DNA of 63,676 nucleotides, filler included, from Cercozoa sp. M6MM (Eukaryota; Protista; Endomyxa: Ascetosporea), in the NCBI GenBank assembly GCA_040357565.1. It is 11 parts of 11 records of this genome, joined end to end, with 100 filler letters (N's around TTAATTAATTAA, not from the genome) between each part and the next. Parts side by side here need not be neighbours in the genome. Positions count along the whole stretch, not along the records: positions 10,799 to 24,283 come from JBDODJ010000354.1; 10 more parts are not named here. One strand, given 5' to 3'. The notes under the pieces were generated by a model. It searched no databases. It was not told the origin of the DNA and worked only from the letters and a program-made list of their open reading frames with translations. Numbering within the stretch: the first letter of the stretch is position 1; each line of letters begins with the position of its first letter. Position numbers and translations under genes: made by a program. Positions 16,579 through 23,463 of the stretch are shown here, piece after piece.

Positions 16579-19500
16579 CTATCGCTGCAGACCACGTCGC
16601 TTGGACAGACGCCACGCGTCCTGATCCGTCGCGCCTGTCATCCAAAATCAAGCACCGCGTCTCCACACGAAACACAAGACAACAAACACGCAACAACAGA
16701 GAAGAGAAAAGAGAAGACGGTACGTCGATCGAAGAGCGGCTCGAGCTTTTCCTTGCGCTTGTGCTTGCTAACTTGGCCGCCCACTGCGCACACGAGGACA
16801 CAATACAGCATGACTCAAGGCTGTTGTTGAAGCTGTTAAACGCACCCTTGCCGATGTTGGCACGGCGGAAGTAACGTGGCGCCATTTCGACCAGCCACTG
16901 CGGCTCCACGGCCTGTTGCACATTGCACACACCGAATGCGAAATCAGGAGGCGAAGGAAGGGCCAAGGGAGTAAGGCAGGGTACCGTAACAGCGTGCATG
17001 TACTCGCGAGTCGTCAGAACGAGCTTGTGGTACAGGATCCATGGCGGCTGGCGGCGGTACGTGGCCGATGACGGGTGGATAAACACCTGCTGACCGTCGG
17101 CCACGGTGCGGTAGCCTTCCTGCGGGTCCTTCTTAGCGGCTACGTATAGCACAGGGTACAATAGTCTAACAGAAGAACAGCCGGGCGAGGGTAGGGGTGG
17201 TAGAGGTACTGTACCATTCATGAAGAATCCAGACACGACAGCCTTGCGCACACGCGTGTACTGCCGGCCACACGAGAGCACGCCGAGCTGGTACCGGTCC
17301 ATGATGGCCAGCAACTGCTTGCGCACCTGTGTCCCAAGACAGAAAGAAAGTAGTGCATATGACCAACTGATATAACAGCAGCAAACAGGGGGGGGGGGGG
17401 AGACAAGGGTCTTCCTGTACCTCGGCAGCCTTGCGGAGTGCGCGGCCGTGCAGGAAGTGCTGTCGCGACCACGAGTCGCTGCAGCCATGCTTCTGCCAGG
17501 CCTCGTAGACCTGCGTGCAAAGGGTGGAGTGACAGGGTGGGATGGGGGAGGGTAGTGGTAAGGGCATGACAGGGGAGTTACATTGAGCAGCGTGATGTGA
17601 TCACCCTCGGCTGCCATGAACATGGCGCGTTTCTCGTCGGCCTAACCGAAAGCACAGGACACATACACAATCGTGCCAGCAGGGCAGGGAGTAAACTGAG
17701 CGCCTACCTGCGTCTGCTTATCACGCGGTCGCTGGAAGACCTGGTCAACACTCAGCAGAGCGACGACGGTAAGAATCTCCTCGCTGCAGCCCAGATCGAC
17801 ACTCTGCGGGGATAACGGGGGAGGGGGGGTAACAGGAGGTAACAGGGGGTAACAGGGTGGGGCGACTAAGCTACCTGCATGAGACACTTGGACAGCTGCG
17901 GTTCGAGCGGGAAGTCCGCCATTCGCCTGCCGTGCTTGGTGAGCAGACCGTCGTCATCCTGCCATACGTACACCGACGGTCCATTCGTACACACGCACAG
18001 AGACGGTCCATTTGTACGACTGTGGTACCAATGCGCCCAGTGCGTACAGCAGCTCCATGGCTGCTACAAGTGTTTCCTACGACACACACACACGTGCACA
18101 ACATACACGGAGAGGTCAGAGGGGTGACTGGGGGTACCTTGGGTGGTGGGTCCATGAAGTCGAACGACATGAGATCGTTGATGCCCATGGCCTTGAGTGT
18201 TAGCACTGCGGGCAAGAGAGATAGGGTGGCGCGGGGTGGGGTGGGGTGGTAAGGTGGGTACAGGGGGGGGGGTTGAGGGGATAGTACCAGTGTTGGCCAT
18301 GTTGGTGCGCTGAATCTCGGGCACAGGCATCTCGAGCATCTCGTGCTGGAAGCACTGCTCCGGGTACAGTCGGTAGCACTTGCCTGTGCGTACACATATA
18401 AACATAGGTGCATGTGTACACATAGACACACACACACACAGACATATATGACCGTCCCCTTAAGTCCCTGGAACAGCGTGTACCTGGACCGGTACGACCG
18501 GCGCGACCGGCACGTTGCATGGCCTGTCCGGGAACATACTCAGTGGTAGGAGGGAAGGGAGTAGAGGGGAAGGGAAGGGAGGTAGAGGGGGAGGGAAGGG
18601 AGGTAGAGGGGGAGGGAAGGAAGGCAGAGGGGGAGGGAAGGGAGGTAGAGGGGGAGGGGAAGGGAGGCAGAGGAGGGAAGAGAGGTGGAGGTAGAGGAGG
18701 GAAGAGAGGTGGAGGTAGAGGAGGGAAGGGAGGTACCGAGGCCTGCGAGATGGGCGTCACCTGCAGCGAGTCCATGCCGAGCTTGGGATTGAACACCTTC
18801 TGCTTGCAGAAACCCGGGTCGATCACGTATTTAATGCCATCGATCGTGAGCGACCTGTGAGGCAGGAGAGGGACATGGGGGTATAGGGTATATAGGGACA
18901 TACGGTCCAGGTATAAGGTGTAAGGGTATGGAGGGGGGTAAGCTACGCTTCGGCAATGTTGGTGGCCACGATGCACTTGCGCGTGCCCGACGGTGCCGGT
19001 TCGAACACACGTGTCTGCAGTACAAGCACATGGGTAGGTGTAGATAGGGTCGTGTAGTATAAGACAGGGGTAGGGGTAGGTAGTACCTGCATCTCACTGC
19101 GCAGTGCCGAGTAGATCGGCAGCACGAGGAGTTCCGGAGCGCCCTAAAAAAAGGGGGGGGGGGTAAAGAAGGGTGGGGCAAAGGGGTGAAGGTGAGAGGG
19201 TGTATGGAGGAGGTACCTTGTCGGAAGCAACGCGACCACGTGTGTACAGTGCCTCGCACGCCGAGTCGATCTCCTCCTGTTCACACACACACACACACAC
19301 AAGCACGTGTTATTCATTGAGTCAGTGAGTCAGTGAGTCAGGTCAGTACCTGACCAGTGAGGAAGATCAGAATGTCGCCTGGCGGGTCGTTGATGTGAAT
19401 CTGTCCACAGCATCGAAAGCAGGGGTAAACAGGGGGTGGGGGGGGGGCAAAGTGACACTACCTGCATGGCCGTGTCCAAAGCGGCCTCGACGTAGTCCGG

Positions 19501-22500: not shown

Positions 22501-23463
22501 GTGTGTGTGTGTGTGTGTGTGTGTGTGTGTGTGTGTGTGTGTGTGTGTGTGTGTGTGTGTGTGTGTGTGTGTGTGTGTGTGCGTGTGTGTGTGTGTGTGT
22601 GTGTTGTTGTTGTTGTTGTTGTTGAGGGGGTACGTGTGCGTGTTGGTTAAGTGAGACACACGTATGGTTATAGGTACCGTAGCCTTGCTCGACACAGCGA
22701 GGCGAGACGGAACGCGACGCTCGCGCGGAGGTTGGTACTCCCTCCTGCACAAGATAAGATGGGGTGTACGCGTACCAGGGATAAAGATAAAGGGTCTACC
22801 TGGAGTGATGTCGTTCCGACCGCTCCTTGTTGCGATCGCGACTTCTGTCTCGGTGTCGTTCTCTGCGAGACAGCAGTACTCTTGTCTAGACACAAGAAGG
22901 GAAGCAAAAAGAAAGGTACCTTGATCGATCACGAGGTTCGACAACTCTCGTCATGCCCTACGCAGTGAGCAGTCCCAGTACCAGTGCCAAAAACAAAGAA
23001 GAGACGAGTCAAAGAAACGCACGAGCATGCCGACGACGATGTTGTGGAGATTGCGCGCGAACTTCTCCGGCAGCTGCAATCGTCGCGAAACATCAACAGC
23101 GAAAAACAATCGAGACATAGTCGCAGGACAACGGAAACACGCACCTTCAAATCGGCCAGTTTCGTCACAAACTGTTTCTCCTGTCCAAATAAACGCATAG
23201 ATTTAAACAAAGTGACGCACGCAGACAGGGGAGGAATCAAGTGTACCGATGTGTTCTTGGCCATCTTGAGAATGAAGTTGTTCACCTTGGCATTGTCGAT
23301 GTTGTGGTGTGTCTACGTACAAACAAAGTGTTTCGAGTCCAAAGCAGGATCAGCAACAAGAGTGACAAAAACAACAACGAAGACAGCAACAAGGTACGCG
23401 AAGCTCTTCGCCGATACGCCGAAGCGCCGACAATTCTTTCAACTTCGAGACGCCACCCGACAT
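16579..23463 (-). CDS. DHX8: DEAH-box splicing helicase DHX8/Prp22, 46 exons
   Basis: [87 protein letters not shown]; C-terminus [22 protein letters not shown]; N-terminal PWI-like and RS regions. Frame traced through all 45 GT-AG introns. Confidence 0.96.
18545..18733. repeat. Intronic purine-rich minisatellite (22-bp gggaagggaggtagagggggag and 24-bp units)
   Basis: Direct tandem copies inside DHX8 intron 33. Confidence 0.85.

Follow-up and report, generated by a model that had tools for sequence, protein, structure and literature searches.

A short 5' splice-site consensus beside canonical spliceosomal RNAs in the intron-dense DHX8/Prp22-type gene and other genes of Cercozoa sp. M6MM

How does a spliceosome choose its 5' splice sites (5'SS, or donors) when the introns of a gene begin far more often with GTAC than with GTAA, and in none of the aligned cases with GTAAGT? 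The question is raised by a predicted DHX8/Prp22-type helicase gene of Cercozoa sp. M6MM (GenBank assembly GCA_040357565.1), the single minus-strand gene within positions 16579-23463 of the window, i.e., the whole 63,676-nt stretch of joined contig parts that was analyzed. The gene lies on contig C354 of an assembly of 23.6 Mb in 2235 contigs. Donor positions +4 to +6 are thought to matter twice, in U1 binding and then in the hand-over to the U6 ACAGA box. To our knowledge, the known evolutionary shifts at +4 are shifts between A and U that track METTL16 and SNRNP27K. A sequence-only reading of the gene had collected 45 donors by hand (26 GTAC, four GTGC, three GTAA, about ten with +5G) and had ranked a possibly rewired donor-recognition system as the best candidate there for an undescribed system. 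The counts are consistent with those obtained here by alignment and in the N-terminal part of the gene, and the donor pattern does recur in other genes, in 17 loci and in the neighbouring plus-strand gene. The proposed cause, however, mostly fell away. What remains is a shift in 5'SS preference without a change in the small nuclear RNAs (snRNAs).

Spliced alignment to P0084, a 1174-aa DHX8-like reference protein that was retrieved with one exon of the window gene, placed 36 introns, between 61 and 213 nt long, beyond protein position 352. The aligner charges a fixed cost per intron and penalizes any start but GT (or GC) and any end but AG. Because positions -3 to -1 and +3 to +6 carry no score, it cannot produce a preference there. 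GTAC is the most frequent start (18/36), followed by GTAG (n = 7), GTAA (n = 3), GTAT (n = 2) and GTGC (n = 2), and the absence of GTAAGT that had been read by eye holds in the alignment (0/36). By position, +3A (31/36) and -1G (27/36) prevail, +4C occurs in 20/36 and -2A in 19/36, and +5G is as weak as had been claimed (6/36). An ab initio parse of the gene drew on codon usage and intron composition, with weights restricted to -2, -1, +3 and acceptor -3 and none at +4 to +6. It returned 27 of the 36 introns identically and divided three that were over-long around micro-exons. The 27 introns supported by both approaches comprise 17 GTAC, five GTAG and three GTAA donors, no GTAAGT and four cases of +5G. 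Alternative placements exist for the junctions at 20864/20856, 19914-19734 and 21495-21235.

A wider set of introns was taken from other genes of the assembly: five DEAH paralogues aligned to P0084, and six HSP70 genes, one F1-beta gene, three CarB-like fragments, one IleRS and one GlmS gene aligned to Escherichia coli K-12 proteins. The latter references were translated from annotated loci and were productive for HSP70 and AtpD, with little obtained from CarB, IleS and GlmS. Introns of 35-300 nt with flanks of at least 14 BLOSUM units in eight residues on each side were retained, which left 80 introns (79 GT-AG and one GC-AG) in 17 loci on 17 contigs; counts are given for the 79 GT-AG introns. 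Both the 36 DHX8 introns and these 80 high-confidence introns have GT-AG (rarely GC) ends, and their removal restores the reading frame. In the 79 introns, -1 is G in 84% and +3 is A in 85%. Position +4 is C in 51% (n = 40), G in 22%, T in 18% (n = 14) and A in only 10%. A proportion of 23% carries +5G, compared to 15% in the interior background, and no base stands out at +6. Among the donor words, GTAC (n = 34) leads, followed by GTAG (n = 16), GTAT (n = 10), GTAA (n = 7) and GTGC (n = 5); GTRAG occurs once (1/79) and GTRAGT never (0/79). A gene finder that has learned GTRAGT donors will mis-annotate this genome. GTAC thus accounts for 43% of the donors (34/79), compared to a share of 7.6% among the GT sites of the 181 kb sampled (p = 8e-18). 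Nothing relevant on GTAC or GGTAC donors came up in literature word searches.

Base composition has to be separated from preference at +4. Within DHX8 alone, the excess of +4C is modest (14/21; p = 0.013) because the sense strand of the DHX8 introns is 40% C. In introns with less than 30% interior C (mean 18%), however, +4C still occurs in 22/38 (58%; p = 3e-8), and this strong excess in C-poor introns shows +4C to be a real positional signal. In C-rich introns, G is the enriched base at +4 (12/41 versus 8%). A parse of 181 kb free of splice-site weights, which used only GT..AG, codon usage and interior composition, yielded 24 chains with 234 introns in all, whose donors rank in the same order (GTAC 32%, GTAG 18%, GTGC 11%; +3A 64%, +4C 49%, +5G 24%). 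Summed over -3 to +6 and measured against the intron background, the donor holds about 8.6 bits, which is a conventional amount, and each of the positions +4 to +6 holds 0.05-0.17 bits. Complementarity to U1 (-3 to +6) and to the U6 ACAGA box (+4 to +6) ends at +3, and each of the 79 introns allows canonical U1 a contiguous pairing of 3-6 bp through GT. A mild excess of T marks positions +6 to +12 (40% versus 32%). The introns are short (median 66 nt), with phases 0/1/2 in 49/21/9 cases. Their acceptors read RYAG|G, with C (65%) or T (35%) at -3, G or A at -4 (85%) and G at +1 (57%). TTAC is contained in 35/80 introns, its last copy mostly 13-31 nt from the 3' end, and C/T tracts are common; a yUUAC-like word followed by a C tract may be a candidate branch-like signal.

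The same aligner and filter were applied to 20 DHX8 genes of other eukaryotes from a metagenome as a positive control, which gave 18 introns in 13 loci. Here, +5G is present in 14/18, +6T in 13/18 and GTAC in 1/18, and the difference from the M6MM introns is clear for both +5G (p = 2e-5, Fisher) and GTAC (p = 0.002). The pipeline therefore detects the conventional donor signal where it is present. Scanning the metagenome with the exon encoding the OB fold found no close relative, the best match being 71% identical in what is a very conserved exon.

The snRNA genes were located with Rfam models. Six near-identical U1 loci align end to end with the model at 36.9 bits (gathering score 69.5), and all six copies carry the 5' end ACTTACCTGG with the canonical ACUUACCUG. 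A compensatory U1 was ruled out as a candidate by an exact pattern search of the assembly, which found only these six and no copy with A, C or G replacing the T opposite +4. The stretch AAGTA just 5' of ACTTACC is kept in all six loci (L001-L006), with differing sequence further upstream, and because of this the mature U1 may start a few bases before the Rfam alignment does. Nine U6 loci were found, and ACAGAGA is intact in 8/8 copies read (GATACAGAGAAGATTAGC). Loop I of U5 is likewise canonical, GCCUUUUACUA, and reads GCCTTTTACTA in five copies. The sequence-only reading had envisaged a variant U1 or U6 and compensatory change in U1, U5 or U6; since U1, U6 and U5 are all canonical, that idea is refuted. 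Other pairing schemes were tried by hand against the position tables and rejected: neither shifted or bulged U1 registers nor pairing with the extended U6 stretch upstream of ACAGA fits, as the donors show no A at +5, no G at +6 and no A at +7. Genes for U4 and U2 were found as well. In 5/5 U2 copies read, the branch-binding box has GUAGUU where GUAGUA is usual (L019-L022 and L017; contigs C303, C280, C452, C662 and C513), and the U2 5' end deviates from the Rfam consensus. On two contigs, a U5 gene and a U2 gene share their orientation at a distance of about 300 bp (C280:11776-12401 and C513:7212-7909), a recurrence of spacing and orientation that suggests a repeated snRNA gene cluster.

Loss of splicing proteins had been offered as a further cause. 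A PF05971 (METTL16/RlmF) family gene is present on contig C198 with matches in at least three exons, one of which bears the S-adenosylmethionine (SAM) motif DVGTGAS and ends in CNPP right before a GT. This refutes the loss of METTL16 at the level of gene presence; the gene is best called METTL16-family, a name that covers both a METTL16 and a bacterial-type RlmF orthologue. A zf-U1 (U1C-type finger) gene and a LUC7 gene are also present. For SNRNP27K, the assembly gave no PF08648 match, and a degenerate pattern returned a chance-level match only. This non-detection is uninformative because the domain spans 56 aa and the assembly is incomplete and intron-dense.

We read these introns as ordinary U2-type GT-AG introns with a lineage-specific, compressed 5'SS consensus, in which a short core donor is read by intron definition, and assign a probability of roughly 0.6 to this explanation. 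The consensus is spread over many genes and stands beside canonical U1, U4, U5 and U6, with U2 canonical except for one base of its branch-binding box. Nearly all donor information is held by G|GTA, i.e., -1G, +1G, +2U and +3A. Position +4 prefers C and then G and avoids A, and +5 and +6 are unspecified. U1 pairing across the junction would be limited to 3-6 contiguous base pairs, between -2/-1 and +3, and the U6 ACAGA box would be left without a pairing partner at +4 to +6. If U1 pairing stops at +3 and U6 is unpaired at +4 to +6, donor choice must rest on other cues. These would be the exon-end G plus GUA, recognition across the very short introns, and 3' signals consisting of RYAG|G and a yUUAC-like word with C/T tracts 13-31 nt upstream, to which the mild pyrimidine excess at +6 to +12 may add. 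Behind the preference for C or G at +4 there is probably a protein reader or a non-Watson-Crick contact rather than a changed snRNA.

A stronger form of this reading is that the major spliceosome picks its donors without usable U1 or U6 pairing past +3 while positively preferring C or G at +4, where the base would face position 5 of U1 and the central A in the ACAGA box of U6. We put this forward tentatively and with the odds against it. If true, +4 would have to be read by a protein or through a non-Watson-Crick contact, or else through a lineage-specific snRNA modification. Nature would then offer an example of donor choice that can do without the U6/5'SS helix, in a genome of extreme intron density. 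A eukaryote that is rich in introns, keeps canonical snRNAs and has a METTL16-family gene, yet shows C or G at +4 and no +5G, falls outside the known A/U scheme. It would serve as a natural test of the share that exon-end/U5 contacts, intron definition and proteins have in donor choice.

Compared to canonical U2-type introns (MAG|GURAGU), the M6MM introns share the GT-AG ends, the YAG acceptor, the restored frame and a full set of U1, U2, U4, U5 and U6 with canonical 5'SS-contacting sequences. They differ in having no A/G/U preference at +4/+5/+6, with C and then G at +4, and in the absence of GTRAGT (0/79). The missing complementarity at +4 to +6 is a departure from the usual consensus and does not decide which spliceosome removes the introns. 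In Saccharomycotina, a switch from +4A to +4U is tied to the loss of METTL16 and SNRNP27K in intron-poor yeasts (Parker et al. 2023, PMC10581693), and the +4 preference shifts there occur without sequence change in U1 or U6, U1 ACUUACC and U6 ACAGA being invariant (PMC10581693). A lineage-wide change in +4 preference with unchanged U1 and U6 is common to both cases. In M6MM, however, +4 is C or G instead of U, +5G is lost too, the genome is intron-rich and a METTL16-family gene is present. The same source describes an 'AG//GU' class of 5'SS in plants and animals that combines strong U5 with weak U6 interaction potential and coexists with a //GURAG class (PMC10581693). The strong exon-end G and the weak +4 to +6 are similar in M6MM, but the //GURAG class is essentially absent (1/79). 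The anticorrelation between exon match and intron match is weak in M6MM (rho = -0.20; p = 0.08). One DHX8 donor (21043) reads GTATCCTTT, as do U12-type introns (donor RTATCCTT), but the whole set holds only one or two GTATCC donors, and the 3' part of that intron (20944-21043, minus strand) has no clear TCCTTAAC box. U12 and U6atac gave no match in the incomplete assembly, and no search was made for U11 or U4atac.

Which other explanations could account for such donors? Rewired donor recognition, with a variant U1 or U6 or the loss of METTL16 or SNRNP27K moving the load to U5, would suit donors that are not complementary to positions 3-5 of U1 or to the ACAGA box of U6, and the very strong -1G fits a heavier exon-end/U5 reliance. 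The SNRNP27K search, uninformative as it is, adds a missing match on the same side. The explanation runs into the canonical sequence of every U1, U6 and U5 copy read, the lack of any variant U1 in the assembly and the presence of METTL16-family, zf-U1 and LUC7 genes. In yeasts, moreover, METTL16/SNRNP27K loss goes with +4U and not with +4C plus a lost +5G, and +4U reaches only 18% here. Rewiring, reduced to missing or altered proteins as its residual form, therefore seems to us quite improbable. We consider it highly improbable that the pattern is a gene-modelling artefact, with boundaries off by a few bases or unrepresentative genes hiding conventional donors. A few DHX8 junctions do have alternative GT sites and the sample is small, but the aligner, blind to anything beyond GT and AG, recovers +5G and +6T from genes of other eukaryotes, 27/36 DHX8 introns have the same placement in the independent ab initio parse, and the 17 loci in which the pattern recurs were aligned to reference proteins of three unrelated kinds. 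Several points do weigh against a compressed U2-type consensus. All boundaries were set by protein homology, reading frame and GT-AG, a dependence that also leaves room for an artefact. About 0.8% of the fragmented 23.6-Mb assembly is covered, with about 24 genes, several of them picked via homology to conserved proteins. In the C-rich introns, most of those of DHX8 included, +4C equals composition (18/41 versus 48% C). To these comes the conserved AAGUA stretch upstream of the U1 ACUUACC.

The main rival for the GTAC word itself is historical: most introns may have been gained in a burst by an introner-like or repeat-driven process with a GTAC 5' end, of which +4C would be an unread relic. 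Introner elements of Micromonas, Aureococcus and other protists occur at a very high and uneven density, with a motif common to many introns. Density is extreme and uneven in M6MM as well, and it differs more than tenfold among genes (contigs C1422, C1695, C587, C1364 and C353). DHX8 has about 45 introns and the CarB-like fragments have 19-24 predicted introns per ~3 kb (24 in 3.5 kb of one), compared to three in the F1-beta (AtpD) gene and 1-9 in the HSP70 copies, one of which has a 320-codon exon. In other eukaryotes, the aligned part of the DHX8 orthologues is interrupted by 1-3 introns, compared to about 40 in M6MM. In addition, a short motif recurs in many introns: about half of them are C-rich, with at least one copy of TTTACCCC or CTTACCCC on the sense strand, and TTTACCCC/TTACCCCC is the most over-represented non-simple 8-mer in 181 kb (109-121 copies versus ~5 expected), repeated on the sense strand inside introns. 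Unlike introner elements, however, these introns lack extended mutual similarity and target-site duplication. An all-against-all blastn of 95 introns found only low-complexity matches of 15-24 nt, and the identity between donor and acceptor flanks (mean 3.10) equals that of shuffled pairs (3.12 +/- 0.08); an introner family was dropped as a candidate for these reasons. Moreover, +4C is strongest in C-poor introns without the motif, and the near-invariant +3A and -1G indicate selection on the site. We regard the historical explanation as unlikely.

As for the gene itself, tblastn and protein-to-genome spliced alignment match P0084 to the window exon by exon from residue ~350 to the C-terminus. 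The exon at 16985-17137 matches Pfam OB_NTP_bind, and against solved structures it scores highest with DHX8 (74 bits), ahead of DHX16 (51 bits) and yeast Prp22 (46 bits). Because of this ranking we assign the gene as a DHX8/Prp22 orthologue. With about one intron per 27 codons, its intron density is unusually high. The coordinates of the gene, its introns and its neighbour are given in the table.

Table. Features of the DHX8/Prp22-type gene and of its neighbour, in window positions. "Both" marks introns placed identically by spliced alignment and by the ab initio parse.
Feature	Position	Strand	Donor	Basis and remarks
DHX8/Prp22-type DEAH-box helicase gene	16580..23454	-		tblastn and spliced alignment to P0084, PDB matches, Pfam; ~45 short introns
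DHX8 start codon ATG	23452-23454	-		taken from sequence by eye
DHX8 stop codon TAG	16580-16582	-		taken from sequence by eye
N-terminal third of DHX8	22341..23393	-		exon structure partly settled; ab initio chain and reading by eye, without homology anchor
N-terminal donor	23393	-	GTACCT	by eye
N-terminal donor	23246	-	GTACAC	ab initio chain
N-terminal donor	23144	-	GTGCGT	ab initio chain
N-terminal donor	~23012	-	GTGCGT	by eye
Intron	22113..22232	-	GTAAGC	both
Intron	21990..22061	-	GTACCG	both
Intron	21712..21791	-	GTACGT	both
Intron	21092..21186	-	GTACTG	both
Intron	20944..21043	-	GTATCCTTT	both; U12-type donor word, intron begins GTATCCTTTC
Intron	20585..20646	-	GTACGC	both
Intron	20402..20501	-	GTGCCT	both
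Intron	20283..20347	-	GTAGTG	both
Intron	20116..20227	-	GTACCT	both
Intron	19947..20052	-	GTACAC	both
Intron	19525..19625	-	GTAAAT	both
Intron	19401..19461	-	GTAGTG	both
Intron	19277..19349	-	GTACTG	both
Intron	19144..19216	-	GTACCT	both
Intron	19015..19086	-	GTACTA	both
Intron	18855..18946	-	GTAGCT	both
Intron	18524..18736	-	GTACCT	both; C/T-rich tandem repeat inside, seen in sequence
Intron	18384..18483	-	GTACAC	both
Intron	18206..18287	-	GTACTA	both
Intron	18077..18137	-	GTACCC	both
Intron	17959..18028	-	GTACCA	both
Intron	17804..17874	-	GTAGCT	both
Intron	17642..17707	-	GTAGGC	both
Intron	17511..17581	-	GTAACT	both
Intron	17327..17420	-	GTACAG	both
Intron	17140..17214	-	GTACAG	both
Intron	16913..16984	-	GTACCC	both
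Intron before the last coding exon	16635..16723	-	GTACCG	spliced alignment only
Neighbour gene (called SET by the sequence-only reading)	12930..15700	+		ab initio parse without splice-site matrix; ~20 predicted introns of 49-126 nt in 2.8 kb

The plus-strand neighbour is probably the gene that had been called SET. Its exons are too short to match Pfam. Its 20 introns are T/G-rich, with GTAC (n = 5), GTAA (n = 3), GTGC (n = 3) and GTAG (n = 3) as donors and +5G in two.

The introns fall into two classes, one C-rich with the TTTACCCC/TTACCCCC word and one T/G-rich without it. The word often occurs several times per intron, beside long C runs (e.g., 19734-19914, 20402-20501 and 20116-20227, minus strand). 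Literature word searches for the TTTACCCC motif returned nothing relevant, and there is no enrichment of a GGACGGT-type motif that had been noticed in several introns. Introns also contain long (CA)n, (CAA)n and C/T-rich minisatellite repeats (e.g., 22470-22640 and 18524-18736), and a long (CA)n run is found inside one N-terminal DHX8 intron. The contig carrying the gene ends in (GT)n/(CA)n runs on both sides (window positions 10799-10860 and 24230-24283), and breaks in the assembly probably fall at such simple or minisatellite repeats.

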